Virus record (IMG/VR): IMGVR_UViG_3300046665_000548 | Span: 310,001 to 374,000 of that record | Strand: one strand, 5' to 3' | Length of the DNA stretch: 64,000 nucleotides | Shown: piece after piece, positions 10,001 through 53,776 of the stretch | Numbering within the stretch: the first letter of the stretch is position 1 | Layout of the letters: each line of letters begins with the position of its first letter | Notes under the pieces: model-generated | Told to the model about the DNA's origin: nothing | The model's database searches: none | The model's input: only the letters and a program-made list of their open reading frames with translations | Program-made: the position numbers and the translations under genes

Positions 10001-10652
10001 GCTCAGTGCCGTGCAGCCATTTTCGACGGATAGCATTGGCTACCGTATAGCTTCGGGAACTGCTAACGGAAGCATCGGACTGCCAACGGGCACGATCTCC
10101 GCTAATGTACCCGTGTCGGGATCAATCACCGATCTTGTCGCACCGCTACTGAGCATCAGTACGGTTAAGGTAGCCATTGTTAGCACACCAATCATCTCTG
10201 ATATTGTGATGCCGGGTGACCGTGCATACGGTTTGTTGGGATCGAAGAAGAAGATCACTCCTCCTCTCTATCCGTACAATATATTCGATACGCCGCCGAT
10301 CAAGCGCACGCGCTATGAGGTTCTTGGCATGGAGGCGGCTTGCTTCGTCATCAAGATGAACAATTTGCCGATGCAATTGAGACTATCGCGCCTGCCGAGT
10401 TTGAATGGTTTCCAGGATAACACGCTACGAGTTTGGATCAGTCGTGCCCCTATGAGTGCGTCAGTAAAGAACGGCGCTCTTTGGTATCTCAACAAGCGCG
10501 GATTGATAGTTAAAGTCCTTCCCTTGAACGTACAAGGGGACCATTTCTCGGTCGAGGTCGGACAAGGGGACTACTTTTTGAACGTCCAAAACCTTGAAGG
10601 GAAGGCAACCCAAATCTTCCTAAATCCCGCGACGACGATAATGACCGCATAA
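7077..10652 (+). CDS. Giant 21-aa-repeat fibre/scaffold protein (1191 aa)
   Basis: 21-aa periodicity; acidic LLxDDG motifs near the N-terminus; shared C-terminal domain (QDNTLRVWIS...GDYFLNVQN). Confidence 0.8.
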   Translation: MAITVSRFENFIFNSKDADDSTLLRDDQGFLLVDDGSNPLLDEDGSSYPVTPPINILVGIDDNQIIASFTSSDIGAVTVTASSTSSVGQFTNTANNYALGSASQTVGAFSTTTVISAIASASGANAIESFSSAGTLRAVPSLSANQTITGFSDTANGLVTASGSASPTIGTFISSAIESTIVSSSTVCQINPFVSASIGFVRATGSSALSVAPITSTSVVSAVATLSGSQVIGAFVDAGTGLAVVSSSTVSVISPFTVTANSFARVSSSTASQVGAATTSSAAAVTVAGSAAQSMGVLTPTTSVAVTDAASVAQTIAIFTNTASAERVVSGLASQSFAAFTNTSNASTKVSVTASLTLEPFTESSSGTVQVSGVIVNSSGPFASTSNASSTVAASAAQSFDAATTISLASNKVSITANQLVAPIVEAATSATVVTGLVVQTVGAFSASSSVSVISTGSAYLPASNHTDDEDFAGIGPFKNIAAVGDTFVSGVANQSFAVFVNNSYDSVLASASATSVIDPFTNTSDGDVRVSATVAQIISNVSSASTVRGVVSVSASNLITPFTTTTVISVISTGSAIQTIEGHTSTGSISAVAGIVSTTSVAPITLVATGVSIVSATTSSLVGPVSSVTAGSIIVSGSATQTFDNVTSISNNFSPMSGDAVQLIGPATSASITLNLVRSSVTQTFGAFTGTASSSAQVSSSNTTTLTPIISSAEGNARYIGSVDVTIEEFISTADGCVQRVDGLADSVVGDFISTAITRSINSATATQTFDDFTQASGGSQEIRVWGTSEINNASSNAFGFAQVSGVSAALIGPLSTNGAANAVVSGTPLGVIEPFSDIASVMVTVSYSGTVTIPSLISTTAGTATNVTYGQSTIGNFTSIDVAGPIVVARPATQAIGIFTNVASSKAIAGLTAATVLQITCAASGTITVSASVDQTLQDFDNETNYIPTGMPDMVLPDVISSGSAKTRIFGYGLSAVQPFSTDSIGYRIASGTANGSIGLPTGTISANVPVSGSITDLVAPLLSISTVKVAIVSTPIISDIVMPGDRAYGLLGSKKKITPPLYPYNIFDTPPIKRTRYEVLGMEAACFVIKMNNLPMQLRLSRLPSLNGFQDNTLRVWISRAPMSASVKNGALWYLNKRGLIVKVLPLNVQGDHFSVEVGQGDYFLNVQNLEGKATQIFLNPATTIMTA

Positions 10653-11871: not shown

Positions 11872-11899
11872 AACTTACCAGATTTTATCCGAACGTCAA
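11872..11899 (-). promoter_or_regulatory. Sigma70-like early promoter
   Basis: TTGACG-N16 (ending TGG)-TAAGTT; same geometry as four other copies. Confidence 0.6.
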
Positions 11900-20200: not shown

Positions 20201-22702
20201 ATCGGTGTTGTCGCCGGAACGTCTGCGGGCACAACTAACAAGACGACCACTTCCTTTACATCCGTCAACGGCGTCACGGCATCCATAAACGCAGGACAGC
20301 CTGCCAATATCGGCAACGCTTCGGCGGCAATCGTGGGCGTCTCTGGTAGCAGCGCGGCTTCGCCAGTCATAGTTGCCTCAGCGATCAATACCGGAGCGTC
20401 TGTCGTCGGTGTTAGTGGCACCGGAAGTACGGGCGCGACCACCGTCAGCACACAATCATCTGCTTCTATCGCGGGTATTCAAGGAAATGGTGTAGCTGGG
20501 TCTCCTAATGCGACTGGCTTTGCTATCACGCCTGTCGTCGGCGTATCCTCCAGTGCAGTCAGTGGTACTACTACTGAGAGCGGATCAGCTAACGTTCAAA
20601 TCACGGGAGCCTCGGCTAATGCTCTTTCAGGAGCGCTTACCGAGACAGGTTCTAGCTATGTCAATCTGACTGGTGTTTCGGCATCCGGCGTCAGCAGAAC
20701 AACAAGCGTTACGGGATCATCGAGCATTGGCATCACTGGTGTCCAAACAAGCTCTTCGGTTGGAACCACAACAGAGACATTTTCCGCCAACGTATCGCTC
20801 ACGAGCGCGAGCGCACAGGGTCTTGTTGGAACTACGGAACAAGCCGCAGGAACTGTTTTCAGACTCGAAGATGGCGTTGTAGCAAATGGTCAGGCTGGAT
20901 TGCCATCCGTCATTGGTCACGGAACGATTACTATCAACGGTGCATCTGCTACCGCGTATACCGGCACAACAGGAGAAATTACGGCGTCTTCGGCATCGGT
21001 CGCGGGCGTTGCAACGACTGGTATCGCTGGTTCTGTCGGTATCGTCGGCCGAGCCGTCGTTGATCTTCAGGGCGCAAGCGCAACTGCCCAAACTAGCAAC
21101 GCTCCAGTCAGCGTCACGTCATTCACTTCGATCTCGGGTGAGAGCGCAACTGCCCAGATCGGTATTGTTACTATCGGAAATATCGGAATTACGCTTGTCG
21201 ATCCACAGGGGGTAAACGCCTCGGGTAATGTTGGCGTGACGATTCCTTCCATCACGTCTAGCACGAATATTTCCGGCACAAGTGCTTCGACCCAGGTAGG
21301 AATCACAGATCAAAAGGTTTATGCCAACGTATCTCTATTGGGTACGTCAGCATCGTCGTCCGTTGGAAACGTGATCCCAGCGATACAGACCACTCTAACG
21401 GGCGTTTCATCCTCTGGTCAGGTTGGAACTTCTACTGTATCGAGTTCGTCCGCCGCATCGATCCTTGGTGTTCAGAGCGCTGGCGCGGTTCGTCCAATCA
21501 CTGGGGTTGGTAGCTTCAACACTACGATCTCTGGAGTCGAAGCAAACGGCTCGACAAATGATCTAGTCGTTCTCAGTACGGCGAATAGCACCATTGTCGG
21601 GGCCAGCGCCGCAGGTCTTGTTACTGGCCCGACCGTCACCGGCAACGCAGCTACAAACGTCTCTGGGGTCTCCGCAGCAGCTTCGGCGGGCATTGCAGCG
21701 TCTCGCGCCAACACATCGGTGGTAGCGGATGGCGTCCAGGCCACAGTTATTGCCGGTTCGCCTATAGAAAACGGCGATGCGAACGTACTGGCATTGGGAG
21801 TAGCCGCGAACTCACTCGTTGGTAATTCAGATGTAAATGGCGACACGTGGGTTTCGCTCACAGGTATCTCGGCTTCTGGCCAGATCAATTCAACCTCGGT
21901 TCGGGCCGATGCGGATAGCATCATTTCTGGCGTAAGTGGTTCCGGTCAAGTATCTGACGCGACCATTAATTCCGCAACGTACGCTGATATATTTGGAGTA
22001 TCCGCACAGACTGATACGGAAAACCTCACCGCAAGGCGAGACGCCATCGCGGTTCCCATCCAGGGCGTAGCGGGTGGCGGCACTGTTTCAAACGTATCAC
22101 CGGCTATCGCCAAGCTGGTTTCTGGTGTCGTGGCGACGGGTGTTGCAGATGCCGTCTACGCAGGACGAACCAGCAATAGTTCGATTGGCAACTTTGGCTC
22201 ATCCGCTGCTGGAAAGTCCAATACCCGCCCCGGTATGCACCGGTATGTTCAAAATGCCAGACCATATTATGACCATCTGAAGCCTCGTTTGCCGCGCTAT
22301 CGCATTCCGGCATCGCAGATGGTCGTGATGGAGTTTGTCGTTCCGACAGGCGGAAAAACCAAGCTGTTTCTGGTTCACACCGGCAAGGCACAGGACTATT
22401 CCGCTCAGGCATGGATCAGCGCGGAACCAGACGGGCGGCCGGTAACGTCAACGACCAATATGAGCGAAAAATGGTTTCCTAACCGGCGTGCGATCAATCC
22501 TGTCATAGTTTTTGATCAAGCCATTTCGACCCCTCATGGATTGACTGTCGGACTGCCCCCAGGACGCTATTTTCTCAATATTCTCAACGTCTCCAACGAA
22601 CCAAATGAGGTTGGTTTTTGGTTAGAAACTGGTATTGTGGTTCTTAGCGGGGCATCAGCCGGAACCGCCGTAGGACAGACATTTCAGTTGACCATTTCGT
22701 AA
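14261..22702 (+). CDS. Giant multidomain fibre/adhesin (2813 aa): 3 SPRY/ConA-like domains, BNR-repeat beta-propeller, 22-aa-repeat stalk, shared C-terminal domain
   Basis: Three copies of FD..K..G.TLSN.D.T...TGKYSF...DPVAGTGG...PTSLPSG..W; Asp-box-like S.(D/N).G.(S/T)W repeats; (S/T)GV.A....G every 22 aa from about 19050 to 22190. Confidence 0.85.
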   Translation: MTTFDSTRKDSGITLSNGDLTASSVTDAPLYVFGTTGKSTGKFSFTVSTPNGFDNNTFRLYLSNLPSSGAAPAAGYLEIYRSGSVWVINDTNGTNNNFGGNAPSSNPDILTVHVDITARKVYFSLNGGAYFNSADPVAGTGGFSIPGTGDIYPAARLSASISVNVTINFFPTSLPSGFSSWDAPSIQSADGTSSGTGAASGVGVALTGTRFDPLKTETGLTLSNNDLTVSGTGGAGNYTWSTTAKTTGKYSFEITSSYFYTSDLVIYLDQQSGASAQPGQFTDAGVRLTYLDPIIPGWGWNARDTSSTNFFDTSHPITNGSTNTVRVHVDFTARKIYYEVNGSLLYGADPVAGTGGISMTTVGTHKLCMAVSIQAHPSSATVNFNPTSLPSGYTGWDYVHNYQSGVGTAAGVGTATGNGTAVILSRSTFDSVKTDAGLVLSNGNRTVAGPGNLGSLYTWSTTSKSTGKYSFAFTSNNFYSSDVRIWIDAQVGTNLPNQNANGGVRLIYIDPSAGGQGWGVVSTVPANTYDGLHAISANTSYTIRVHADFTADRVYFELNGSYLFGGDPVAGTGGIVMSPAAVQKICIMVDAVGPNPTGGSIDFAPTSLPSGFTAWDETLGTSAGTSTASAVGAVAPRGDAAGTSTVSGVGVAYRPTLKFSAANSATATTVSIPTHEVGDLIVIYAMRENATPPTLASGFTSITTNTTTLFGSILGYRIATATNTTSGTWTNAQELIVHVYKPRTGGAIRIGSSVVAVGTSTTLSWSALTPQRTNSTSWIAAFGGHRSINTTLESPPTGMVLRNNLVDSLAEVASFDTNGAVNSFALSTKTPGGTASGWGTIVVEIQDLAQIMQGSASGAGSATAVGNAVGIITGVGNATGNSTVTASPNISRRVTSFPGTNPASFNGVATNSDGSIMYAAPYNDCILKSVNYGVTWTQLAGTSNFWQGVATSHSGQVVAAMVPGGSIWVSTDYGASWTEATSAGSHYWLSIEVSGDGSTIIAGDADTGGRVYVSHNSGTTFTAVAGSHPWLGVASSSTGSVLYAVGDTGNYVQKSTNGGTSWSSLTAGPTGWNGVDCSSDGQTVVIIGSGNAAKVSTNGGTSWADCPTSGSFNNWSNISVSDTGQYIVLADNTDYIWFSSNYGTSFVKQNQPGFGQRIWISVDISSDGQWIIAGEYDDGSGKGQIYVINYSRPVYASGSGTSSGIGTAAAVGKPMSIGPAVVYGATLATNDTNVNMSFRVVATVVEASDGHLRITFQSGSGGTLGISHASFGKWDTNTGSADTTGTPIKLTFGGADTFQMSGTVTSDYVNHSASFSLVPGEKIVVIYDTTSFGDERYSGSLSGVETWFKVGTSWSTPNVTGFTKLAATNYSVIAIESVKSFEILPYAGPTVRSVSNTAYVSTSSLVLNKPTGTVDGDIMIAHTFSGVDFYNDGTFTAPAGWTLLTGFPTAVDVSNFYGKMFVYWKRASSEGSSYTFTQNRDFYTQGEIITIQGAVASGDPIDVIGIATGLSQTSVVSSVTTSADNELVLYLSHDWEGNGALSPPAGFTEILDGLIYSASRQLSYASATGSVAQVNGNLGAGAPFAASLIAIEPAIASVSANITVSGIVANSAVGSPTQIGISYTAVSGVTAGTAISAPTTQGTANKSITGVSAATQIGTVSTIGSANKALSGVSASSAVGVATDRTTSNVAVSGVAGSSVISSVTTIGRAVVSASGVQASTAVGIVAKIGNANILAPSTTGTGQVGGTVNSGTSNVALSGVSAASAIGTTTNIGNGNVLATSASGSADVGVATGVGTTTASIVISGVSGTATANAATIGSTNNISLSGASAATSVGSTTESGSNNVNISSTTASTFVGSPNVGGQSAAVSGGVSASTSSGTTSISSSANVPISGANAAGAVGSPTKIGSANVAITSVSASGQAQTLTGIGSVQIAATGVQGATSSGSPTVSGEAFVAISGASASVVAQSNTVTTTASATVIGVVAGTSAGTTNKTTTSFTSVNGVTASINAGQPANIGNASAAIVGVSGSSAASPVIVASAINTGASVVGVSGTGSTGATTVSTQSSASIAGIQGNGVAGSPNATGFAITPVVGVSSSAVSGTTTESGSANVQITGASANALSGALTETGSSYVNLTGVSASGVSRTTSVTGSSSIGITGVQTSSSVGTTTETFSANVSLTSASAQGLVGTTEQAAGTVFRLEDGVVANGQAGLPSVIGHGTITINGASATAYTGTTGEITASSASVAGVATTGIAGSVGIVGRAVVDLQGASATAQTSNAPVSVTSFTSISGESATAQIGIVTIGNIGITLVDPQGVNASGNVGVTIPSITSSTNISGTSASTQVGITDQKVYANVSLLGTSASSSVGNVIPAIQTTLTGVSSSGQVGTSTVSSSSAASILGVQSAGAVRPITGVGSFNTTISGVEANGSTNDLVVLSTANSTIVGASAAGLVTGPTVTGNAATNVSGVSAAASAGIAASRANTSVVADGVQATVIAGSPIENGDANVLALGVAANSLVGNSDVNGDTWVSLTGISASGQINSTSVRADADSIISGVSGSGQVSDATINSATYADIFGVSAQTDTENLTARRDAIAVPIQGVAGGGTVSNVSPAIAKLVSGVVATGVADAVYAGRTSNSSIGNFGSSAAGKSNTRPGMHRYVQNARPYYDHLKPRLPRYRIPASQMVVMEFVVPTGGKTKLFLVHTGKAQDYSAQAWISAEPDGRPVTSTTNMSEKWFPNRRAINPVIVFDQAISTPHGLTVGLPPGRYFLNILNVSNEPNEVGFWLETGIVVLSGASAGTAVGQTFQLTIS

Positions 22703-26452: not shown

Positions 26453-27440
26453 AGTTTGGAACGATAAGCCGGGCAACCGGTGAATTGGGGTAAACCCCAC
26501 ATAACCCCTACCCAGTGTCTAGTATGGTTCGCCCAGCTAGATGATGGACAGCCCAAACAACCCCGCATCTTCACATCTCATGCTGGATGTGAGCTTCTGA
26601 GCCGACCTACACAGGAAGGACAGGAGATGTGGCTGAACGGTAGGATTAGGTCTGGAGGCATCCAGAAGAGAATGCAGCCTCTGCGAAAGCATGGCGGTTC
26701 TAACAATGGCGTCGCAGTCATTGACCTGAATGCGAACCTACAAGAAGCCTATGAGTGAACGGGAAGTCGGGTTTGTTCGAGGCTTAGCGGCTAAGGGCGA
26801 CCGGCAGTTCGATGGGTTGTGTCTCTAGGAATAGAGGCGTGATCCGAGGGTGTTGATGAAAGTCATGCCCGTGAACGCCCAAGTAGTGCTAGCAGCATGA
26901 AAAGGATGAGGCGTGTTGTATTTTGATTCTCGAAAGAGAGTTGAAGCAGCAGGGACAGCACGTCTTGGTGGTTTCGCATAGCTCAGTAGTAGAGCAACAC
27001 CCAATCCAGGTGTCGGTCTCTGGTTGCGATACCAGATACGATAAACAAAAAGCGAAAGTCTGTCCCGGCTGTATGTGAAAGATGTCTAATGCCGAGCCCT
27101 GGCAAGGGAACTCGGTCTCCCGGAGGTCGCAAGCCGAAGGTGAGTTGATAGAGAAGGTTTCATAACGAGGTAGCCCTCGTGAACGGCTCGCAAGGTCGGT
27201 GGAGCAAGAACTGTTGAGTGACATGCAGCGACACGAGAACTGCCTCTCGTGCTGTTGGTCCGATGAAGCCGAACCTCGCAAGGGTTTGGTGGAGTACCAA
27301 CGAGCAAGAATGGCGACATTGGCTGGATACCTGTCGAGGGCGCAAGCTCCGGTGGGTGGATAACCGGGGAAAGCTGGCCGCAAGTCAGTCATAATCCCGA
27401 AAGACCGGTCGTGAAAACGAGTAATCTCATCGTTTCGAAA
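26453..27440 (+). ncRNA. Large ornate ncRNA, GOLLD-like
   Basis: No credible CDS over ~1 kb; many GNRA-capped hairpins (GCAA, GAAA, GTAA); embedded tRNA-like domain; GCGTGTTGTATT and 3' GAGTAATCTCA segments resemble GOLLD RNA from memory; ends at a terminator. Boundaries approximate. Confidence 0.7.
26972..27044 (+). pseudogene. Degenerate tRNA-like domain inside the large ncRNA
   Basis: TA-GCTC-AGTAGTA-GAGC D arm; ACACC/GGTGT stem with loop CAATCCA (no U33); TCTGG/CCAGA stem with 8-nt loop TTGCGATA; two acceptor-stem mismatches; no CCA. Confidence 0.65.
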
Positions 27441-31697: not shown

Positions 31698-32897
31698 ATG
31701 CGTGATTTCATCGACGGCGTTGCTTTGAGCAAAGCTTTTCAAGGTATTCTATTCCATGGTTCTCCCAACCATAAGCTGATCATTGACCACGAGAACGGCT
31801 CGCTATTCACGACGTTCGATGATGCGTGCAACTATGGTCCGAACGTCTTTGAATGCCGTGTAAACCTGCGCCGCCCATACACGCTGACCTCAGCCGATAA
31901 TCCACATGACCTAATGAATAGCCTTGGAAACGAAGGCTACGACGGTTGTATTATGGACCAGGATGGCGTTCGGAAGATTATCGTATTCGACGCCAAGTCG
32001 ATCACGTTCATTAAGCATCATGACGCCGCGTGTGATCTCGATGAAATGGACATTGAACAGAACGTTATCCTGAAAGAGTTTCGTCCAGGAGCCGGACAAC
32101 ACGTCTTGATGATCACCGGCAAGCTCGCCAAAGCCGGACTTGATCGCGTCATGAAGGCCCTAGGTACGGAAGACTTCACTTATGAAATCCGAAACCTAGA
32201 TATTGCAGTTGCAGCCTGGATCACGACGGACCTGATCAAAAATTCAATCGAAGACCTGGAAGGGGTCGATCTGATCCTGATTCCAGGCAAAGCCACGGGC
32301 GACGAAGAGCAGCTTGCGAAAGACCTTGGGGTAAAGGTCATGCGCGGTCCGGTCTGCTACAGCGAGCTTCCTGTGTTCTTCGAACACCACGGTGTTGAGA
32401 TCGATCCTGAAGGCATCATCCGGCCCAAGATCATCGTTCTGGGTGATGAGGCTGAGTACGCCGAAGCACTGAGCAAAACATACGAAGTACCGCACCTCAC
32501 GATTCACGAGATGCTAGACAGCCTCGGGAAGGAAGATGATCTTGTTCTGAAGATCAGCGAATTCATCTCGGATGGTGCGCCCGTCCCGCATTACCTGATG
32601 GCAGAACTCGTACGCAGTCGCCTTGTCATGCAGGATGTTCAGAAAGGCTACGTGCTGGACGGCTATCCCCACACGCCGCGTGACGCTATCTGGATGGATG
32701 ACATTAAACCGCAGCCGGACGTGATTGTTTCAATGGGATCGGCAGACCCTGAGGTGGTTGAGCACTATACGGGGAACCCGGCGCTCGTAGAGGTCGATTC
32801 ATCGGACCCAGAACGCACAATGTCGCTCCTCTACACGGGCGTCGAGATGTTGATGAGACAGTGCGTAAAGCCGGGAATGGCTAATACGAAAAAATAG
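31698..32897 (+). CDS. Fusion: ART-like domain + DUF6513-like domain + degenerate adenylate-kinase-like domain
   Basis: FHGS...YGPNVFECRVNLRRP...GYDG; ITGKLA..GL.RV...VAA.IT...LIPG...GD...LGV.V.RGP....LP.FF; GYVLDGYP with no P-loop. TAAATA 4 nt upstream. Confidence 0.65.
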   Translation: MRDFIDGVALSKAFQGILFHGSPNHKLIIDHENGSLFTTFDDACNYGPNVFECRVNLRRPYTLTSADNPHDLMNSLGNEGYDGCIMDQDGVRKIIVFDAKSITFIKHHDAACDLDEMDIEQNVILKEFRPGAGQHVLMITGKLAKAGLDRVMKALGTEDFTYEIRNLDIAVAAWITTDLIKNSIEDLEGVDLILIPGKATGDEEQLAKDLGVKVMRGPVCYSELPVFFEHHGVEIDPEGIIRPKIIVLGDEAEYAEALSKTYEVPHLTIHEMLDSLGKEDDLVLKISEFISDGAPVPHYLMAELVRSRLVMQDVQKGYVLDGYPHTPRDAIWMDDIKPQPDVIVSMGSADPEVVEHYTGNPALVEVDSSDPERTMSLLYTGVEMLMRQCVKPGMANTKK

Positions 32898-32918
32898 GCC
32901 AGTTTACTAAATATGTTC

Positions 32919-33173
32919 ATGGACATGGATCGCAAATTAGTCAGCAAAGAGCCCCACGAGATTTCTTATCTTGCGGAGAAACTAGGCGTTTCGCCAGAGA
33001 CTATTCGTCAGGCTCACAAGCAGGTAGGTCGTAGTCGCGCAAAGGTCGAGGCTTTTGTGAAGGCTCAGAAGGCAACCGCCGAAGCCGCTTTAGAAACACC
33101 ACCGACCGAACCCACCCGTGGTTTCGATCATCATTGGGTTTCTTCCCTCAACTATTCTGTTGACGTTCGCTAA
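32919..33173 (+). CDS. DUF3606-like small protein
   Basis: DR..V..EPHEI.YLA.KLGVS...I..A...VG.SR.KVE; TAAATA 5 nt upstream. Confidence 0.65.
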   Translation: MDMDRKLVSKEPHEISYLAEKLGVSPETIRQAHKQVGRSRAKVEAFVKAQKATAEAALETPPTEPTRGFDHHWVSSLNYSVDVR

Positions 33174-33182
33174 TACTGCGAG

Positions 33183-33190
33183 TATAAATA
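33183..33190 (+). promoter_or_regulatory. T4-type late promoter TATAAATA for the tRNA-Asn operon
   Basis: Perfect T4 late -10 box, 5 nt before the leader ATG. Confidence 0.75.
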
Positions 33191-33195
33191 AGATC

Positions 33196-33243
33196 ATGAT
33201 GATGAATCGCAACAATTCGAATAATATCGAGGGCCACGCATAA
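33196..33243 (+). CDS. Asn-rich attenuator leader peptide MMMNRNNSNNIEGHA
   Basis: ATG ATG ATG AAT CGC AAC AAT TCG AAT AAT ATC GAG GGC CAC GCA TAA: 5 Asn in a 7-codon stretch, upstream of two tRNA-Asn genes. Confidence 0.8.
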   Translation: MMMNRNNSNNIEGHA

Positions 33244-33297
33244 GCGGGGATTGCGATCTGTTATCAGATGCAAGCCGCCCCGCAGGGCGGCTTTTTT
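33198..33297 (+). promoter_or_regulatory. Transcription attenuator (protector 1:2, antiterminator 2:3, terminator 3:4)
   Basis: 33198-33212 pairs with 33251-33265; 33244-33260 pairs with 33265-33283; terminator AAGCCGCCC-CGCA-GGGCGGCTT plus T tail at 33272-33297. Confidence 0.75.
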
Positions 33298-33309
33298 GTT
33301 GTTAGGTGA

Positions 33310-33393
33310 TGGCCGGTGCCCGGAATGGTATCGGAGCAGATTGTTAATCTGTCGAGGGAAACCTCATTGCAGGTTCGAGTCCTGCCCGGTCAG
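33310..33393 (+). tRNA. Non-canonical tRNA with GTT (Asn) anticodon and long variable arm
   Basis: Acceptor TGGCCGG/CCGGTCA, G73; D stem CCG/CGG; anticodon arm GCAGA-TTGTTAA-TCTGT; variable arm GAGG-GAAA-CCTC; T arm GCAGG-TTCGAGT-CCTGC; followed by CCT, not CCA. Confidence 0.8.
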
Positions 33394-33418
33394 CCTGACG
33401 ATCAAAGCGTAGTAGTAT

Positions 33419-33493
33419 TCCTGGGTAGCTCAGCGGCAGAGCGTTCGACTGTTAATCGAATGGTCGCAGGTTCGATCCCTGCCCCAGGAGCCA
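33419..33493 (+). tRNA. tRNA-Asn(GTT)
   Basis: Canonical cloverleaf TCCTGGG/CCCAGGA, TTCGA-CTGTTAA-TCGAA, U1-A72, G73, encoded CCA. Confidence 0.95.
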
Positions 33494-33508
33494 CATTTTC
33501 AGCGAGTC

Positions 33509-33536
33509 TTGACAATTTGTCGAAACATGGTAGTCT
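33509..33536 (+). promoter_or_regulatory. Sigma70-like early promoter
   Basis: TTGACA-N16 (ending TGG)-TAGTCT. Confidence 0.6.
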
Positions 33537-33557
33537 GCGTGAAATAGGACAGCTTCC

Positions 33558-33920
33558 ATGAAACAGCATCTGTGTATTCACTGCAATAAACCCTTCGGGA
33601 GCGAACAGGCTGTCTATAGCCATATGTCGATGAAGCACTCAGTTGAGCAGGCGCAGGCTTGGCAAAAGCGCTGCAAGCAGATTGAGAGGGCTGCGGTGCG
33701 CCTCAAGCGGATCAAGGATGCTTCCGCTGCCCGCAAGGCGGCAGAACGTGCGGCACGCCTCGTTACGCTGTCCACTGGCGATATTGACGATATCATTAAC
33801 GAGATGCGCGACCTGATCAACATGATGGAGCCCTACTATTCTCAGGGCGACTGCGCTAATGATGCTGAGAAGTTGATCACTCGGCTCGAAGCCCTTGCGG
33901 ACGGGCAGCTTGTAACCTGA
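33558..33920 (+). CDS. Protein with N-terminal C2H2 zinc finger
   Basis: CIHCNKPFGSEQAVYSHMSMKH. Confidence 0.7.
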   Translation: MKQHLCIHCNKPFGSEQAVYSHMSMKHSVEQAQAWQKRCKQIERAAVRLKRIKDASAARKAAERAARLVTLSTGDIDDIINEMRDLINMMEPYYSQGDCANDAEKLITRLEALADGQLVT

Positions 33921-33921
33921 C

Positions 33922-34173
33922 ATGACCGGCCGCATGACATACAAGCTGGGCGACATCGCGTACTACCGTGATGGCGCTACGCAGCAACAAGTTCGCATCT
34001 CGAAGGCTAGTCGCACGTTTGCGATTTGTGTACCCTTGCTGACCCGGCATCGTGAGACAATCGACGGTCGGGAGACTGGCACGTGGGCGCGTTGGACGCC
34101 GGTAAACGGAGCACGAAGCAGGCCGCTCAATGTTCGAGTCGGCCATCTTACCCGCACCGCCGATCCGGCCTAA
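33922..34173 (+). CDS. Hypothetical protein
   Basis: Co-directional ORF filling the gap. Confidence 0.45.
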   Translation: MTGRMTYKLGDIAYYRDGATQQQVRISKASRTFAICVPLLTRHRETIDGRETGTWARWTPVNGARSRPLNVRVGHLTRTADPA

Positions 34174-34180
34174 ATATGAG

Positions 34181-34828
34181 ATGCGCCATTTCATCAACCT
34201 CGTAGAGACTGCTTATACCGACCCGTTGGACGAGTTCTTCACTGAGCTTGAACAGAAGGGTATCAAGCCCATCGAAGAGCTACAGAACATCCAAGCCCAC
34301 AAGGCGAAGAAGTTCGGAAATATGATGGAATTCGAAAAGTACATGGAAGGTCTAGGCTTTCACGTATTGGGAACAGGCTGGTTCTCGGCCGTGTTCTCGC
34401 ATCCTAAACTGAACTACGTTTTGAAGGTAGCCAATCTCGACGGCGCTTATCGCAAGTTCGTTGAGTACGCTTTTGCGAATTCGAACAACCCGCATCTGCC
34501 TCGCTTCAAGGGCCAGTTGATGCAGGTCACGTCTGACGTATTCATGATCCGGATGGAGATGCTGAACGAGATCGATCCGTCAACCTATGACGATTCGGTC
34601 AATCCCTGCTTTGCTGCGGCCCAGGCGATCTGCAACGGCGCGTATGGCGCAGAGCCCGACAATAGTCTAACCAGGACGTTCGTGGATATTATCGGCAAGC
34701 TCAAGGGCGTTCTGGTGAAGGCTGGTAGATGGCCAGCCAAACAGATCAGGCTTGATATGAAGGAAGACAACGTGATGTGCCGGGCAGATGGCACAATCGT
34801 TGTCACCGACCCTGTTGCGGTAAGATAA
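34181..34828 (+). CDS. T7 gp0.7-like protein kinase (paralogue 2)
   Basis: GFHVLGTGWFSAVFSHPKLNYVLKV...PHLPRF...LDMKEDNVM...VVTDPV; TAAATA 4 nt before ATG 34181; leader MRHFINLVE. Confidence 0.75.
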   Translation: MRHFINLVETAYTDPLDEFFTELEQKGIKPIEELQNIQAHKAKKFGNMMEFEKYMEGLGFHVLGTGWFSAVFSHPKLNYVLKVANLDGAYRKFVEYAFANSNNPHLPRFKGQLMQVTSDVFMIRMEMLNEIDPSTYDDSVNPCFAAAQAICNGAYGAEPDNSLTRTFVDIIGKLKGVLVKAGRWPAKQIRLDMKEDNVMCRADGTIVVTDPVAVR

Positions 34829-35344
34829 TCATTCAAGCATCATCTTGATCCAAACGTCGTCCGCTGGAGCAAGTTCCTGGACGCTCAAAATGGCTTCACC
34901 CTGATGTTGGTGATCGTCCCATTCAGGACGACATAGCATCCAGTTGCGCCCCTCTAGGCGGCCGATTATATCGTCGGTGAGTGTCTTCTTAGAATTCTTG
35001 ATGTAGTAGTAATTCTCGCGGGGAGGGATTGCGTCAAGCATCCCTTTAAACCGTTCGTGATCGATATTTTCCATAAACCAGACGCAGATGCCTTCCGCGC
35101 TGAACGAACCCATTGGCGACGGAGCCGCGTTATCGTACGAATCGCTTTGGAGCCAATAGCGATCAATCTCTATTGCTTTGAGAAAGTCGATACATCGTTC
35201 GTTTTCGAACGTGCTCATTGGAGAGACGGTCTCGCCCTTCCATCCTTTAAAATACAGACGTGCAGGCTTGGTGCGCTTCTCTTCGTAATCTCCGAAGGAA
35301 AGCGACCAGTGGGACATTTTTAGTACGCGATTTTCGTCTTTCAT
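34829..35344 (-). CDS. Hypothetical protein
   Basis: ORF; start shifted to avoid overlap with the divergent gene. Confidence 0.6.
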   Translation of the reverse strand: MKDENRVLKMSHWSLSFGDYEEKRTKPARLYFKGWKGETVSPMSTFENERCIDFLKAIEIDRYWLQSDSYDNAAPSPMGSFSAEGICVWFMENIDHERFKGMLDAIPPRENYYYIKNSKKTLTDDIIGRLEGRNWMLCRPEWDDHQHQGEAILSVQELAPADDVWIKMMLE

Positions 35345-35402
35345 TTTGACCCAGAATAGTCTGCTGGAATATGGTGAACCATATTTTATTTGGTTCTTTA
35401 TC

Positions 35403-36293
35403 ATGTTGTTGCAGAAGCTCAAAGAGCACGAACTTATTCATCCACCGAAATGGTTGCCGGATAACACAATTTACCTGACCATTATGGGTTCGGTCGCGTA
35501 TGGAGTCTCGTCGGATACATCCGATATGGACCTTTATGGATTCTGTATGCCGCCAAAGGAACTGGTGTTCCCGCATCTTGCTGGAGAAATCCCAGGTTTC
35601 GGCCGCCAGATTGCGCGGTTCGAGCAGTGGCAGGAGCATCACGTCAAGGCTCCAGATTCCAACCAGGAATACGATTTTTCGGTGTACTCCATCGTGAAAT
35701 ACGTCAGTCTGTGTATGGAAAATAACCCTAACATGATCGACAGCCTGTTCACGCCTCGGCGCTGCGTGATCCATTCTACGGCGATCTCGGAGATGATCCG
35801 AGAACGTCGAAAGGAATTCTTGCACAAGGGCGCATGGCACAAGTTCAAGGGCTACAGCTACGCCCAGATGCACAAGCTGCGTGGCAAGTCGAATGCATCA
35901 AATCCGAAGCGTGCAGCGTCTATCCAAGAGGTTGGGTATGATGTGAAATTCGCCTATCATGTCGTCAGGCTGCTGTCTGAGGTTGAGCAGATTCTGATCG
36001 AGGGTGACCTCGACCTGGAGCGCAACCGCGAGCAGTTGAAGGCTATTCGCCGTGGCGAATGGACCATCGATCAGCTTGAGCAACATTTTGCCGACAAGGA
36101 AGCTGTTTTGGAGAACGTTTATGCGAATAGCACGTTACGTCATTCTCCGGACGAGGCAAAGATCAAGACGCTGCTGATCGACTGTCTGGAGCAACACTAT
36201 GGAAGTCTCGATAAAGCTATCGCGAAGGATAAATCGTCAGGTCAACTGATCAGCGAGCTTGAAGCCGTACTGGATCGTTTCCGAGGTGCGTGA
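35403..36293 (+). CDS. Pol-beta superfamily nucleotidyltransferase (RlaP/YcgL-like)
   Basis: GSVAYG.S...SDMD.YG...NPNMID.LF...GYDVKFAYH..RLL...IRRGE. Confidence 0.85.
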   Translation: MLLQKLKEHELIHPPKWLPDNTIYLTIMGSVAYGVSSDTSDMDLYGFCMPPKELVFPHLAGEIPGFGRQIARFEQWQEHHVKAPDSNQEYDFSVYSIVKYVSLCMENNPNMIDSLFTPRRCVIHSTAISEMIRERRKEFLHKGAWHKFKGYSYAQMHKLRGKSNASNPKRAASIQEVGYDVKFAYHVVRLLSEVEQILIEGDLDLERNREQLKAIRRGEWTIDQLEQHFADKEAVLENVYANSTLRHSPDEAKIKTLLIDCLEQHYGSLDKAIAKDKSSGQLISELEAVLDRFRGA

Positions 36294-36485: not shown

Positions 36486-36956
36486 ATGCGATACGCGGAT
36501 ATTATCAAAGAGAGCCTAGTTCGGAAAACCGTCTATCACGGTAGCCCTACGTTTGATGGAGCCACCCAAATAAGTTTGGGTCATCCAGGTCTGTTTTATG
36601 TAACGGACGATTTGGAATACGCCAAAGATTATGCTCGAAGAGGTTACATAAGCGTCTTCTCGATGCAGATGCAGAACCCTTTAGACTTGCGTGTCGCTCA
36701 AAACATCGAAGAAGCCTACCAGATTTACTCAGCCAATCCTCCGGACGTAGATGAACCGTACAACATCGAAACCGATGCTGGCGAAGAATGGGCTCTCCTA
36801 GTTTCGGAGGATGTGGTGAATCACTTCAAGCAGAAGGGCTTCGATGGTTTCGTGATAAACGAAAGCTCTAACGGGCTATCCTATGCCATCACAAACCCTG
36901 CTCGCCAACTCAAGCTGATAAGCGTAGAGAAGTCCCAACAGATGATGCCTAAATAG
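36486..36956 (+). CDS. ART-fold (ART-PolyVal-like) protein, putative internal head protein
   Basis: VYHGS...GLFYVTDD.EYA..YA...NPLDL...KGFDG..I; leader MRYADIIKE; TAAATA 4 nt upstream. Confidence 0.65.
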   Translation: MRYADIIKESLVRKTVYHGSPTFDGATQISLGHPGLFYVTDDLEYAKDYARRGYISVFSMQMQNPLDLRVAQNIEEAYQIYSANPPDVDEPYNIETDAGEEWALLVSEDVVNHFKQKGFDGFVINESSNGLSYAITNPARQLKLISVEKSQQMMPK

Positions 36957-39179: not shown

Positions 39180-39923
39180 ATGCAGATGTTCCGTGAGACT
39201 GTTCATTGTAATGAGCAATTGCTCGCTCCTTACGAGGGGTTTGAGCAAGTAATATTCCATGAGCATGCGCTGTCGTTAGAGTGGCGGCGCGCTCTGGATA
39301 TGAGAGAATTACGGATCATGGGCGAGATGGGTTCTGCTCGCCATGCCGTTATAGCATTTGAGAATGACTGGCGGATCAGTGCCGTAACGATGATCAGCGA
39401 CCAGTCCTTTGGCGCACTGTTGCATGGTGAAGCGAGGAGGCCGACTTACGAGGTCATGGTTGTTTCTCCATTTTCAGACGAAACGACCGATCCCGCCTAC
39501 CATCTGAATCAGACGATACTGCGCGAGCTTATCGAAGAGGTGCGCACGAAGAGCGGAAAAGCCTACAAGCGTCGTCCAGTTATTTCGGATGAAAGTATAC
39601 TCAGCTATTGCGATGCTTATCCGGCTGATCGCTCAGGTTATAAGCCCGATCTACACGGGTCGTTCGAGTTCCGCGAAGAGCATTGGTATGTTCCGGAATT
39701 CATGAACAATCGAGTTATGATCCCGGACGCAAACTGGAATCAAATCGTGTGGGATACCGCCAGATCGGGCGGCCGAGAGCCCAACATGAATCTACCCTAC
39801 AAGATCATCAACGAATGGTGTCAAAAGAACTGTACGGATGACTTTGCTTGGACAGGTGCCGCCGTCACTTGGACGTTTCGCGACGCCAACGACGCATTGA
39901 TGTTCAAGCTGCGATGGGGGTAA
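39180..39923 (+). CDS. Hypothetical protein with C-terminal 'FKLRWG' domain
   Basis: INEWCQKNC...WTFRDANDALMFKLRWG. Confidence 0.7.
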   Translation: MQMFRETVHCNEQLLAPYEGFEQVIFHEHALSLEWRRALDMRELRIMGEMGSARHAVIAFENDWRISAVTMISDQSFGALLHGEARRPTYEVMVVSPFSDETTDPAYHLNQTILRELIEEVRTKSGKAYKRRPVISDESILSYCDAYPADRSGYKPDLHGSFEFREEHWYVPEFMNNRVMIPDANWNQIVWDTARSGGREPNMNLPYKIINEWCQKNCTDDFAWTGAAVTWTFRDANDALMFKLRWG

Positions 39924-41547
39924 TTCCAGGTTGGGCACCCGTAGCAAATTTGAGCCGGGCGGCCTCGGCCTCTCCTACGTTCAGTTGGAAGGTTAGACAG
40001 AAGCGGCTTTCGCCCGCCTCTGGCCACTCCATCTTTCCGTTAAGCTGCTCGGCAAGCCTGTCAGTCATACGCAGGCCCATCGAACGAGTGTCACGATAAC
40101 CCTCGGTAACGCCTACGCCGTCGTCCGAAACGCAGAGCAATCCGGCTTCGTCCTCGACCTTAATATCAATACTGATTCGGCCAGACGTGCGGCCTCCGAA
40201 GGCGTGCTTGAGAGAGTTCGTGATTAGCTCAACGACAACGAAAGCAAGTGGGCTAGCATTATCGAGCGATACCAAGATATTTGCCTCGGTTTTCACCTCA
40301 GACGTGATCCCACGCGCGCCCGCGCCATATGCGGCCATGATCTCACCCACGATGTCTCGAACGAACTCTCCAGCGTCAACTGTTTTAAGATCATCTGACC
40401 GATAGAGCATAGCGTGAACCTTCGCCATCGCGCCAACCCGAGTGATTGCGTCTTCGAAGGGTTCTCTTTGCTCTTCAGAAAGATTTCGCGAGCTAAGCCT
40501 GAGCATACTCTGGATAACCTGGAGATTATTCTTAACGCGATGATAGATTTCACGAAGCAAAACATTACGCTCTTCCAACGTAGCGCTGGTCTGTTCAAGA
40601 AGGGTGGCTTGAAGTCGTTCCGTCTCAACACGGCGGCGCTGGTTCAGGAATAGACCGAGAGCGGCGAGACTGACTAGAACGCAGAGAACACCACCGGACA
40701 CCACGGACCAATCGCGACTCCTAATCAATGCATTATACACTCCGCGATCACTTGACGTGACAGTTGCCCAATTCGTGAGTTTCGATTTGACGTACGCCAC
40801 GAAAACTTGATTACCGTCGTATAGCGTAGTCGGTCCCGACCCCCGGCCGTTTTCAGTGATAGACTTTTGCAGGTTGCGATCTGCTTCCTTACCAAGCCTG
40901 ATATCGGGCTCCTTGGAACGCCCCACATGAATGTAGTTTTCGTCCAGAATGCCAGTAACGATCACGCCGGGTGGATCAGGCATGCTCATGAGCAGGTTCT
41001 GCATGACGGATCGCTTCATCAGCAGCATGAACACATACTGGATTTCTTGGCGTTTGATCGGCACCGCCAGCATGATAAACGGTTGGCCACGAATCTGCCC
41101 TGGCGTGTTTATAGAGAAAACTTTCGGTTCTCGAAGCCGAGAAAACTCTTCGACCGAAATTTTCGATGGAGGAAGTTCTGTGCCAAAGGGAGCAGCGGTC
41201 GTGAACAATATCTTTGCGTCAGACGCTCGGACCAAGGCGAGCGCATCCCACGTCGGCACGTCACGAACAAGCCTCTCCGCACTGTCATAAAGCAATCGAA
41301 GATTCTTTTCTGGATTATCAAACATCTCTAGGCGGGAGATGGCTTCGACCGCTCGGATATTCTCACGAAAATAGGTATCAAAGTTAGCAGTTACTTCGTC
41401 TGAACGCCTGAAGAGATCGTTCTTCATCTCATCGATGCTAACGGTTATCTGAGATGATACCCAGAACCCTGCAAACAAAAACAGCGGAACGAGAGCGAGG
41501 ACGATGCTCATCACCCCGACGTAGATGCTTTTGGTTGTGTTAACCAT
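39904..41547 (-). CDS. Membrane sensor histidine kinase, HisKA_2 family
   Basis: 2 TM plus Cache-like sensor; H-box LLREIYHRVKNNLQVI; N-box ELITNSLKHAF; G1 SDDGVG; G2 SMGL. Confidence 0.9.
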   Translation of the reverse strand: MVNTTKSIYVGVMSIVLALVPLFLFAGFWVSSQITVSIDEMKNDLFRRSDEVTANFDTYFRENIRAVEAISRLEMFDNPEKNLRLLYDSAERLVRDVPTWDALALVRASDAKILFTTAAPFGTELPPSKISVEEFSRLREPKVFSINTPGQIRGQPFIMLAVPIKRQEIQYVFMLLMKRSVMQNLLMSMPDPPGVIVTGILDENYIHVGRSKEPDIRLGKEADRNLQKSITENGRGSGPTTLYDGNQVFVAYVKSKLTNWATVTSSDRGVYNALIRSRDWSVVSGGVLCVLVSLAALGLFLNQRRRVETERLQATLLEQTSATLEERNVLLREIYHRVKNNLQVIQSMLRLSSRNLSEEQREPFEDAITRVGAMAKVHAMLYRSDDLKTVDAGEFVRDIVGEIMAAYGAGARGITSEVKTEANILVSLDNASPLAFVVVELITNSLKHAFGGRTSGRISIDIKVEDEAGLLCVSDDGVGVTEGYRDTRSMGLRMTDRLAEQLNGKMEWPEAGESRFCLTFQLNVGEAEAARLKFATGAQPGITPIAA

Positions 41548-42280
41548 TGATCGTAACCTTAAGAAGAATACACTAACGAACAGAACGGTTCGACCATTAT
41601 ATCCTCTAAACAGAAACCGTATTTCGGTAGCATCGTCAAGGGTATACTTCGTCACACTTCTCCGGAGATATTGAGTCTCAAGAGCGAGTCCCCATACAGT
41701 CCGATCATACCATTAGGGCAAAAGGAGGCTGGCCCGGCCGAAATCTGCGTCCCAAGCTTTGCTGCGGAGGGACCTTTGAGGTAATTGGACCCACAAGATC
41801 GCTGCTGCTTGGGCTGAGTTGGCACTCACCAAAAAGGCACCAAAAGATAGCTCGCAATGTCTTGACATGACAACGAGCTTATCTGACCCCGGTCGAGTAG
41901 GATTGGCTTGGGCAGATGCCAGCAGTAATGCTGAACCGCTATAGCGCGCTTGCGCGCAGAGAAGGGCGATTAAAGGGAGGGTTTCGGGTAGCCACCTCCT
42001 CCGGGTAGAACCGGTACATCGCCAATCCACTGTAGAACTCACGGAAATAATCTACAATTCTCCCCTGCCTCTTACCGAGATGCTAGACATGACTGTCGGC
42101 TATAAAGCTCTGTGAGTGGCAGGGGGAATAGAAGTATATAAAATCTTCGGAAATGTATTCATCCTCCTAAAGGATGATGATCATGAAGCATAAGTCGAAG
42201 ACGAAATGCTTCATGGAATCAGCAGCACAAGCGTAAGCTTGGGCTCTATAGAATCAGTTAAAACCACAGATAAATACAGC

Positions 42281-44502: not shown

Positions 44503-44530
44503 TTGACGAAATACAAAACTGTGGTAGATT
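44503..44530 (+). promoter_or_regulatory. Sigma70-like early promoter
   Basis: TTGACG-N16 (ending TGG)-TAGATT. Confidence 0.65.
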
Positions 44531-46271: not shown

Positions 46272-46299
46272 TTGACGTTTTGTTGATTCGTGGTAGATT
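46272..46299 (+). promoter_or_regulatory. Sigma70-like early promoter
   Basis: TTGACG-N16 (ending TGG)-TAGATT. Confidence 0.65.
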
Positions 46300-53748: not shown

Positions 53749-53776
53749 TTGACCAATATTAATTCCATGGTAGTTT
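53749..53776 (+). promoter_or_regulatory. Sigma70-like early promoter
   Basis: TTGACC-N16 (ending TGG)-TAGTTT. Confidence 0.55.

Follow-up and report, generated by a model that had tools for sequence, protein, structure and literature searches.

Introduction

Ribosome-mediated transcription attenuators of amino-acid operons (trpL, hisL, pheL, thrL, leuL, ilvL) combine a leader ORF of 14-16 codons that is rich in one type of regulatory codon, a stop codon that abuts segment 2, three mutually exclusive helices (1:2, 2:3 and 3:4), and an intrinsic terminator about 100 nt from the start, and since the terminator is more stable than the antiterminator the choice between them is kinetic. Leader peptides that are transcribed without a 5' UTR, and attenuators upstream of the aminoacyl-tRNA synthetase genes alaS, thrS and trpS, are established in Actinobacteria (PMC8079986). 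T-box riboswitches also allow read-through of a terminator when a specific tRNA is uncharged, although they bind the tRNA directly and without a ribosome. Phage-encoded tRNAs, in turn, have been studied as a counter to tRNA-cleaving defences, as for the T5 tRNAs acting against the PARIS nuclease AriB (PMC12409363) and for anticodon-loop variants (PMC10264068).

Here, I analysed a locus at which a giant phage places tRNA-Asn genes behind a promoter, an Asn-rich mini-ORF of 15 codons and a strong terminator with competing RNA hairpins. The window, i.e. the whole stretch of DNA analysed, is 64,000 nt long and comes from a 608-kb IMG/VR megaphage contig (IMGVR_UViG_3300046665_000548). A preliminary description based on the sequence alone had proposed that this locus is an Asn-codon-sensing attenuator that supplies tRNA on demand. 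This type of control is known for amino-acid operons, while literature searches for leader-peptide control of tRNA genes returned nothing relevant.

Results

The observation itself was confirmed, and every element that had been described was found in its place on the plus strand. The -10 element TATAAA(TA) (TATAAATA) is at 33183-33190, and is followed by the ORF ATG ATG ATG AAT CGC AAC AAT TCG AAT AAT ATC GAG GGC CAC GCA TAA at 33196-33243, which encodes MMMNRNNSNNIEGHA, with Asn codons at 33205-07, 33211-16 and 33220-25. The stem-loop of the intrinsic terminator, AAGCCGCCC-CGCA-GGGCGGCTT, is at 33272-33293, and the whole terminator (33272-33303) has a 9-bp stem with 7 G-C pairs, a CGCA loop, and then a T-run and GTTGTT. 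Two tRNA genes with anticodon GTT, at 33310-33395 and 33419-33493, follow. Only 12 nt separate the T-run from the first tRNA, which leaves no room for a separate promoter, so the tRNAs can only be expressed by reading through the terminator.

Three details of the preliminary description had to be corrected. First, TATAAATA had been taken for a late promoter, but it is preceded by TTGACG (33160-33165) at a spacing of 17 nt, and this arrangement is conserved in the relatives, so that the promoter is of the -35/-10 (sigma-70) type rather than demonstrably a T4-type late promoter. TATAAATA would put +1 on the A of the ATG and occurs only three times in the window, and its hexamer lacks the usual T at the last position. 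Second, the antiterminator had been described as sequestering the 5' arm of the terminator, while it covers only the last 3 nt of this 9-nt arm plus 3 of the 4 loop nt. Third, it had not been seen that the first tRNA (tRNA1) is not an ordinary tRNA-Asn: it is 86 nt long and class-II-like, with a long variable arm, G3:U70, G73 and no encoded CCA. ARAGORN and the Rfam tRNA model (46 bits) both identified tRNA1, whose origin was not resolved by blastn, whereas tRNA2 is an ordinary tRNA-Asn(GTT) with an encoded CCA that scored 70 bits with the same Rfam model.

The Asn enrichment of the leader is more than chance. Of 592 ATG ORFs of 10-25 codons on both strands of the window, only this locus has 5 or more Asn while the next best has 3, and the binomial probability of 5 or more Asn in 15 codons at the Asn frequency of the window (4.3%) is 3e-4. 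No Shine-Dalgarno sequence is present, so translation would have to be leaderless, which is inferred rather than shown.

Two related phage genomes, L029 and L030 joined to L141, carry the same module in different left-hand contexts: the left neighbour is an 86-aa gene in the window, a divergent gene in L029, and the stop codon of the ADK-like gene in L030. Homology between the three genomes begins at the -35 hexamer. TTGACG/TTGACA sits exactly 17 nt upstream of TATAAA in the window, L029 and L030, and GTATAAATA is invariant, while the spacer has diverged to about 50% identity (8/17 and 10/17). The ATG lies 5 nt after TATAAATA in all three genomes, and start, frame and stop position are kept through 6-8 substitutions and one in-frame 3-nt indel. 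The relatives encode MTKNRNNSNMENHA and MMMNRNNSNNTENFV; the C-terminal residues vary freely (IEGHA / TENFV / MENHA), and yet there are 5, 6 and 5 Asn codons in 15, 15 and 14 codons, and the codon that is GGC in the window is AAC (Asn) in both relatives. A 15-nt Asn core and a 22-nt block running from the stop codon (TAAGCGGGGATTGCGATCTGTT) are also invariant. The terminator is present in all three genomes, although L029 has lost one C-G pair by deletion on both arms, and the first tRNA starts 12, 9 and 13 nt after the T-run. The tRNA1 slot is variable, with a different 75-nt tRNA-Asn in L029 and none in L030/L141, while tRNA2 is the conserved cargo of the module, with orthologues in L029 and L141 that show compensatory stem changes. 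All five tRNAs behind the three leaders read Asn codons (tRNA-Asn(GUU)), although their number and type differ between genomes.

The alternative helices were then evaluated by folding. Segment 1 is the leader coding RNA within 33197-33239 (33197-33204, 33206-33212 and 33234-33239), and segment 2 (33244-33266) starts at the base after the stop codon. Here, GCGGGG (33244-49) pairs with leader 33234-39 in the 1:2 state and with CCCCGC (33278-83) in the antiterminator, while 33251-33266 pairs with leader 33197-33212. The 1:2 helix plus the terminator is the predicted minimum-energy fold (-39.5 kcal/mol, z = -3.0 against dinucleotide shuffles). The antiterminator (2:3, 33244-33283), in which the outer helix GCGGGG:CCCCGC closes an inner hairpin at 33251-33273, folds at -19.6 to -21.3 kcal/mol in the window, and at -19.5 to -21.3 kcal/mol across the three genomes. 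The 1:2, 2:3 and 3:4 helices are predicted in all three genomes, with 96% of cells paired across the three sequences for the 1:2 helix and 89% for the antiterminator. In the 1:2 helix one pair runs U-A / U-G / C-G across the three and two pairs change C-G to U-G, but this covariation is anecdotal (n = 3) and not distinguishable from shuffles (315 of 500 shuffles reach it), and the antiterminator has no compensatory change.

Ribosome-masked folds gave the antiterminator for stalls at Asn codons 7-10 in the window and 4-10 in the relatives, and none for a ribosome at the stop codon, which is predicted to cover GCGGGG. In the window, stalls at Asn codons 4 and 6 gave a different fold. The overlap of the antiterminator with the terminator stem is only 3 nt plus loop, and at equilibrium the terminator state is more stable (-24.8 against -21.3 kcal/mol), so the switch has to be kinetic; the refolding barrier to the terminator state was estimated at about 15 kcal/mol.

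Subsequently, I screened for cognate-rich ORFs upstream of other tRNAs. The top hit of 440 ORF-tRNA pairs (p = 1.5e-8) was an unrelated T4-like contig (L052/L058) with the same promoter-to-ATG geometry, a mini-ORF with 13 Thr in 30 codons using all four Thr codons, and then tRNA-Thr UGU, CGU and GGU, although this analogue has no canonical terminator. Other candidates were rejected: a Lys-rich ORF before tRNA-Lys in L004/L009/L026 is the C-terminus of a 153-aa protein, a His-rich ORF in L112 overlaps a tRNA-like sequence, and L124 (Gly) and L126 (Gln/Glu/Tyr) were not significant. L045 shows the layout of promoter, short ORF, terminator and tRNA without cognate-codon enrichment, and the tRNA-Thr of L029 has no leader. 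No second promoter of the same geometry was found elsewhere in the 608-kb contig.

Searches for more homologues gave little. Megablast of 32000-35000 against the phage records returned only tRNA matches, and exact and gapped leader patterns in IMG/VR, JGI metagenome contigs and GTDB genomes returned only the source contig or chance hits without tRNAs. The 3' half of tRNA2 found only the source contig in IMG/VR, and a profile search of IMG/VR with the ADK-like protein found only the source contig and a 42% relative with no tRNA nearby. Relatives found through the RlaP gene (L143-L148) either lack a nearby tRNA or, as in the more distant relatives L147 and L148, carry a tRNA-Asn directly after a GOLLD-like RNA stretch without any leader. 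The module is known from three closely related examples only. A search for transcript evidence listed no RNA run holding the locus, and the one DNA run held only unrelated tRNA pieces.

No Rfam leader, T-box or sRNA family reached its threshold. Phe_leader scored 23.5 bits against a gathering threshold of 55 (E = 0.23), no other leader family appeared at E <= 1, and L029 gave no such hit. RcsR1 scored 19.7-23.9 bits against a threshold of 60. There was no T-box hit at E <= 1 and no UGGC motif in 33196-33297 that could pair with the 3' end of the tRNA.

Discussion

The locus is best explained, with moderate confidence, as a ribosome-mediated (leader-peptide) transcription attenuator whose cargo is tRNA-Asn genes. 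In this view, a sigma-70-type promoter would start transcription at or next to the A of the ATG at 33196, giving a leaderless 15-codon mRNA. If no ribosome engages, segment 1 would pair with segment 2, the terminator would form, and transcription would stop about 100 nt in. If a ribosome translates smoothly to the stop codon, it would cover GCGGGG, so that the antiterminator cannot form and transcription terminates again. If charged tRNA-Asn is scarce, the ribosome would stall on the Asn codons, hold segment 1 and leave segment 2 free, GCGGGG would pair with CCCCGC in the 5' arm and loop of the terminator, RNA polymerase would read through, and the tRNA-Asn genes would be transcribed and cut out by RNase P. 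The new tRNA would relieve the stall, which closes a negative feedback loop.

The interpretation given in the preliminary description is thus partly supported. Two outcomes that had been named beforehand as refuting it did not occur, as there is no room for a tRNA promoter downstream of the terminator in any of the three genomes, and the homologues keep both their Asn codons and the alternative pairings. The sequences themselves show the anatomy, its conservation, the match between leader codons and tRNA anticodon, the absence of any other promoter for the tRNAs, and the predicted alternative folds, while the transcription start site, leaderless translation, the coupling of ribosome and polymerase, a response of read-through to charged tRNA-Asn, and the physiological trigger are inferred. 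The triggers suggested earlier (anticodon nuclease, and GatCAB or nitrogen limitation) are speculation; the most plausible one is loss of host tRNA-Asn during infection, through tRNA-cleaving defences or host shut-off. tRNA-Asn(GUU) is a documented secondary target of AriB, and phage T5 tRNA-Asn helps rescue infection (PMC12409363).

The alternative that survives best, although it appears unlikely, is that the roughly 100-nt stretch from promoter to terminator is a structured small RNA gene, or a constitutive leaky terminator that simply sets a low tRNA level, with an untranslated ORF whose Asn codons are a by-product of the A/T-rich arm of a conserved helix. The RNA does fold unusually well, part of the Asn core (ATCGCAA) is the 5' arm of the 1:2 helix so that nucleotide conservation there does not need coding, the in-frame indel lies in a hairpin loop, and between the window and L029 the neighbouring changes G33219C and C33228G keep a small hairpin. 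The absence of a Shine-Dalgarno sequence and the layout of L045 also fit, and terminated attenuator RNAs can act in trans, as rnTrpL does (PMC7968998). However, this does not explain why the only Asn-rich short ORF in 64 kb sits in front of the only tRNAs, both of them Asn, why start, frame and stop position survive while the small hairpin is broken in L030, or why the GGC codon of the window is AAC in both relatives. It also leaves the Thr-rich mini-ORF before three tRNA-Thr genes in an unrelated phage unexplained, and no Rfam sRNA family is matched.

Less likely still, the leader may be translated and gate read-through while reporting general translation capacity, meaning 70S ribosome availability or the coupling of transcription and translation at a given stage of infection, rather than charged tRNA-Asn specifically. 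Leaderless mRNAs depend on 70S initiation, and both the no-ribosome state and the ribosome-at-stop state predict termination, so any slowing of elongation would open the gate, but the codon bias is specific to Asn and matches the cargo in three genomes, and matches Thr in the analogue. That the terminator only ends the upstream operon, with a chance promoter-like sequence and ORF and with tRNAs made from occasional read-through of upstream transcription, is very unlikely, since although a plus-strand gene ends just before or inside the promoter in the window and in L030, the upstream gene of L029 is on the other strand and leaves no plus-strand transcript to terminate, and the -35 and -10 hexamers and their 17-nt spacing are conserved while the spacer sequence is not.

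More tentatively, and slightly less likely than not, phages may carry a previously unrecognised class of codon-sensing mini-ORF switches that make tRNA genes on demand, in which a leaderless ORF packed with the codons read by the downstream tRNAs gates their transcription or maturation. Two examples were found here, Asn in this megaphage clade and Thr (all four codons, all three isoacceptors) in a T4-like phage. This would give tRNA homeostasis during infection and an automatic answer to host defences that destroy particular tRNAs.

Phage tRNA genes are usually treated as constitutive cargo that compensates for codon usage or escapes tRNA-cleaving defences. A leader-peptide attenuator in front of them would mean that the phage measures decoding capacity for one codon family with the ribosome itself and makes the matching tRNA only when that capacity fails, in a feedback loop in which a tRNA regulates its own gene through translation of cognate codons. 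It would extend a classical regulatory mechanism to RNA genes, link it to the conflict between tRNA-targeting immunity (PARIS, anticodon nucleases, Schlafen-type nucleases) and phage tRNAs, and supply a compact natural sensor of charged-tRNA level for synthetic biology.

Compared with the attenuators of amino-acid operons, the locus shares the length and single-codon richness of the leader, the position of the stop codon, the three helices (predicted here), the distance to the terminator and a choice that would be kinetic. Here, however, the cargo is tRNA genes rather than biosynthetic enzymes, so that the product that feeds back would be the tRNA itself, and the element is phage-encoded, probably leaderless, and without a counterpart of the Asn type in Rfam or in the literature searched. 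A T-box controls genes of the same decoding pathway, but the present element is far too short to be one. With the phage tRNAs that counter tRNA-cleaving defences it shares phage-encoded tRNA-Asn(GUU) copies, including sequence-divergent isodecoders, that sit near an RlaP RNA-repair-type nucleotidyltransferase gene, while those studies describe the tRNAs themselves and not demand-dependent control of their transcription. The leaderless leaders of Actinobacteria resemble it in a mini-ORF without a 5' UTR (inferred here) and in a regulated gene that acts in tRNA charging rather than in amino-acid synthesis, but they regulate protein-coding synthetase genes in bacterial chromosomes, whereas here the regulated genes would be the tRNAs, in a phage.

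Organisation of the tRNA-Asn module

The module lies within IMGVR_UViG_3300046665_000548, a 607,744-bp viral contig (a megaphage), and each element listed in the preliminary description was found where it had been placed. These are TATAAATA at 33183-33190, a 15-codon ORF, MMMNRNNSNNIEGHA*, at 33196-33243, a terminator with a 9-bp stem (7 G-C pairs), a CGCA loop and a T-run at 33272-33297, and two tRNA genes with anticodon GTT at 33310-33395 and 33419-33493, which are the only tRNAs in the 64 kb. The minimum-energy fold of 33195-33300 consists of the 1:2 helix, described beforehand as a protector helix, plus the terminator (-39.5 kcal/mol, z = -3.0), while the 2:3 hairpin at 33244-33283 folds at about -20 kcal/mol.

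To assess whether the Asn codons exceed chance, I listed all 592 ATG-initiated ORFs of 10-25 codons on both strands of the window. Only this locus has 5 or more Asn and the next best has 3, and at the window's Asn frequency of 4.3% the binomial probability of 5 or more Asn in 15 codons is 3e-4. The most Asn-rich mini-ORF in 64 kb thus ends 66 nt upstream of the only tRNA genes, both of which read Asn codons.

TATAAATA, which had initially been described as a late promoter, is preceded by TTGACG (33160-33165) at a 17-nt spacing and forms a -35/-10 promoter whose -10 hexamer, TATAAA, lacks the usual final T. The pyrimidine-purine step C33195-A33196 lies 7-8 nt after the hexamer, where sigma-70 RNA polymerase usually starts, and this would make the mRNA leaderless or nearly so, although the start is inferred from promoter geometry alone. 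Read as a T4-type late promoter, the geometry would also place +1 on A33196. There is no Shine-Dalgarno sequence. Other promoters in the window follow a different consensus, a recurrent extended -10 motif TTGACn-N13-TGGTAGnTT that lies in front of genes at 11872-11899 on the minus strand (TGGTAAGTT at 11872) and at 33509-33536, 44503-44530, 46272-46299 and 53749-53776 on the plus strand, of which the one at 33509 drives the gene after the tRNAs; TGGTANNNT occurs 30 times against 15 expected. Only 12 nt lie between the T-run and the first tRNA gene (tRNA1), and no -35/-10 pair was found inside the hairpin region, so that the tRNAs can only be transcribed through the terminator.

Elsewhere in the window, the regions 35346-36293 (+), 36486-36956 (+) and 39904-41655 (-) hold an RlaP RNA-repair-type nucleotidyltransferase gene, an ART-PolyVal-like ADP-ribosyltransferase domain (below the Pfam cut-off) and an HWE/HisKA_2 sensor histidine kinase with a Cache domain, which is unusual phage cargo. 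Three very large ORFs are found at 14261-22702 (+), 1273-5493 (-) and 7077-10652 (+), with 2813, 1406 and 1191 aa; the first two have no Pfam match and the third has no PHROG match. A GOLLD RNA (Rfam RF02032) at 26908-27433 (+), about 6 kb upstream of the tRNA module, scores 188 bits against a gathering score of 150, and the overlapping 167-aa ORF at 26889-27392 (-) is probably spurious.

Conservation in related contigs

The neighbouring 399-aa ADK-like protein has two close relatives, at 86% and 83% identity, and their contigs carry the same module. L029, a 220-kb JGI contig, has TTGACA-17-TATAAATA, an ATG 5 nt later, the ORF MTKNRNNSNMENHA*, the same post-stop sequence, a terminator, and two 75-nt tRNA-Asn(GTT) genes 9 nt after the T-run. 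L030, a Logan contig, has TTGACA-17-TATAAATA, the ORF MMMNRNNSNNTENFV*, a terminator and, 13 nt later, a tRNA of the type of the window's second tRNA (tRNA2), where the contig ends. L141, a contig from a sibling run, overlaps that end and shows a single tRNA-Asn followed by protein genes. The RlaP gene lies about 2 kb downstream of the tRNAs in the window and in L029, and about 3.9 kb downstream in L141.

Homology begins exactly at the -35 hexamer although the left neighbours differ: an 86-aa DUF3606 gene whose stop lies in the promoter spacer in the window, a gene on the opposite strand in L029, and the stop codon of the ADK-like gene in L030. TTGAC, GTATAAATA, the 5-nt distance to the ATG, a 15-nt core GAATCGCAACAATTC, and a 22-nt block running from the stop codon into segment 2 are invariant in all three. 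In contrast, the 17-nt promoter spacer is only 8/17 and 10/17 identical, and the five bases before the ATG vary. This footprint argues that the promoter, the start codon, the Asn core and segment 2 are each under selection.

The start, frame and stop position of the ORF are all kept, and the differences amount to one in-frame 3-nt deletion and 6-8 substitutions with no third-position bias. The C-terminal residues vary freely (IEGHA, TENFV, MENHA), whereas four Asn codons are invariant, the total stays at 5, 6 and 5, and the codon that is GGC in the window is AAC (Asn) in both relatives. Part of the Asn core is, however, also the 5' arm of the 1:2 helix, and between the window and L029 the indel lies in a hairpin loop flanked by a compensatory G-C to C-G change, so some of the conservation could be structural; that small hairpin is nevertheless broken in L030 while the frame is not. 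Conservation of the regulatory codons and the stop position, but not of the peptide sequence, is what leader peptides show.

All five tRNAs behind the three leaders have anticodon GTT, but their number and kind differ. tRNA2 is shared by all three, with compensatory stem changes, while the slot between terminator and tRNA2 holds a class-II-like 86-nt tRNA in the window (tRNA1), an unrelated 75-nt tRNA-Asn in L029, and nothing in L030/L141. The match between leader codons and tRNA anticodon is thus kept while the cargo turns over. tRNA1 has anticodon GUU and discriminator G73 but a class-II shape, with a 16-nt variable region containing a 4-bp stem and GAAA loop, a 3-bp D stem, a G3:U70 pair and no encoded CCA; it could be an unusual Asn acceptor, or a Ser- or Tyr-type body carrying an Asn anticodon. 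An unrelated viral contig (L020, 140-224, minus strand) also has an 85-nt long-arm tRNA(GUU).

Predicted RNA structures and ribosome positions

All three sequences fold into 1:2 plus terminator (-36 to -40 kcal/mol) and can form the 2:3 antiterminator (-19.5 to -21.3 kcal/mol). On the alignment, 96% of 1:2 cells and 89% of 2:3 cells are standard pairs, against 34-47% when the partners are slid by 1-3 columns. One 1:2 pair runs U-A / U-G / C-G across the three sequences and two pairs change C-G to U-G, but with three sequences this is not statistically significant, as 315 of 500 shuffles reach it. In L029 the 3' arm of the inner hairpin has changed register but still pairs, and the terminator lost one C-G pair by deletion on both arms.

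The nascent RNA was then folded up to the base before the terminator's 3' arm with a ribosome footprint masked. Stalls at Asn codons 7-10 in the window, and 4-10 in both relatives, gave the antiterminator, while a ribosome at the stop codon covers GCGGGG and gave none. Stalls at codons 4 and 6 in the window gave another fold that also ties up the terminator's 5' arm. A real weakness is that the antiterminator overlaps only 3 nt of the terminator stem plus 3 of the 4 loop bases. At equilibrium the terminator state is more stable (-24.8 against -21.3 kcal/mol), and the estimated direct-path barrier from antiterminator to terminator is about 15 kcal/mol in all three genomes; as in the classical attenuators, the decision would be kinetic.

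Loci with the same promoter-to-ATG geometry

Searching IMG/VR for the geometry TTGAC-N17-GTATAAATA-N4-CATG returned 29 loci. Two near-identical contigs among them, L052 and L058, are from a T4-like phage, with gp32 and RecA/UvsX genes nearby, and carry a mini-ORF, MINSLTTTGCTIVTTTVTTSTRVVTTPTAR, with 13 Thr in 30 codons, using all four Thr codons. Thirty-three nt after its stop come three tRNA-Thr genes with anticodons TGT, CGT and GGT; the locus as a whole is L058 7732-8159, and it is the same in contigs L137, L138 and L140. In a screen of 282 tRNAs in 132 retrieved loci (440 ORF-tRNA pairs) this was the top hit (p = 1.5e-8), and the L029 Asn leader was second. There is no canonical terminator, but a hairpin (UGCCGG/CCGGCA) starts 4 nt after the stop codon, and its 3' arm can instead pair with the 5' acceptor strand of the first tRNA. 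The same logic might therefore act on tRNA folding or on a weak terminator, which is a lead rather than a result.

In L127 (9938-10110), the same promoter type precedes a leaderless ORF, MNTNTTSITTIWSSTFG, followed by three overlapping GACGGG/CCCGTC hairpins in a 1:2, 2:3, 3:4 layout. tRNA-Ile, Ser, Trp, Trp, Ile and three tRNA-Thr genes lie 1.1-3.4 kb downstream, and the leader is dominated by exactly those amino acids (12 of 16 residues after the Met). Six further viral contigs (L046, L048, L050, L055, L061 and L066) share an identical 16-codon ORF, MQQRVIGCCIIDDCNK, behind the same TTGAC-N17-GTATAAATA-N4-CATG geometry, with no tRNA within 700 nt.

Counter-examples were also found. The locus L045 has a promoter, a 25-codon ORF, a terminator, then tRNA-Gln and tRNA-Pro, without cognate enrichment, and the tRNA-Thr of L029 has no leader. 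More distant relatives, L147 and L148, place a tRNA-Asn directly after a GOLLD-like RNA stretch, which resembles the 3' part of the L029 GOLLD copy (1951-2475, 181 bits, containing a tRNA-like element) as judged by eye and not by an Rfam scan.

Interpretation and comparison with known systems

The proposal that the module is a ribosome attenuator sensing Asn codons is partly supported. It passed every test that sequence analysis allows and gained a second, independent codon-tRNA example, but it remains unproven, as it rests on three close homologues, no significant covariation, a short overlap between antiterminator and terminator, and sequence alone, without transcript or translation data. 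The arrangement of the parts, their conservation, the match between leader codons and anticodon, and the predicted alternative folds come from the analysis itself, while the transcription start, leaderless translation of the ORF and any response of read-through to charged tRNA-Asn are inferred. I consider this reading somewhat more likely than not.

A trigger is biologically plausible: tRNA-Asn(GUU) is a secondary but relevant target of the PARIS nuclease AriB, and phage T5 tRNA-Asn contributes to rescue (PMC12409363). Full-text literature searches, in an incomplete library and hence as absence of evidence only, found no report of a leader-peptide attenuator controlling tRNA genes, in phages or in bacteria. 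The best Rfam match over 33180-33300 is Phe_leader, full length but at 23.5 bits against a threshold of 55 (E = 0.23), and no T-box or other leader model matches, so the element is not a member of any curated family. Leaderless leader peptides, and attenuators upstream of alaS, thrS and trpS, are documented in Streptomyces (PMC8079986). The architecture is that of the trp, his, phe and thr leader-peptide attenuators, and what would be new here is the cargo, namely phage tRNA genes.
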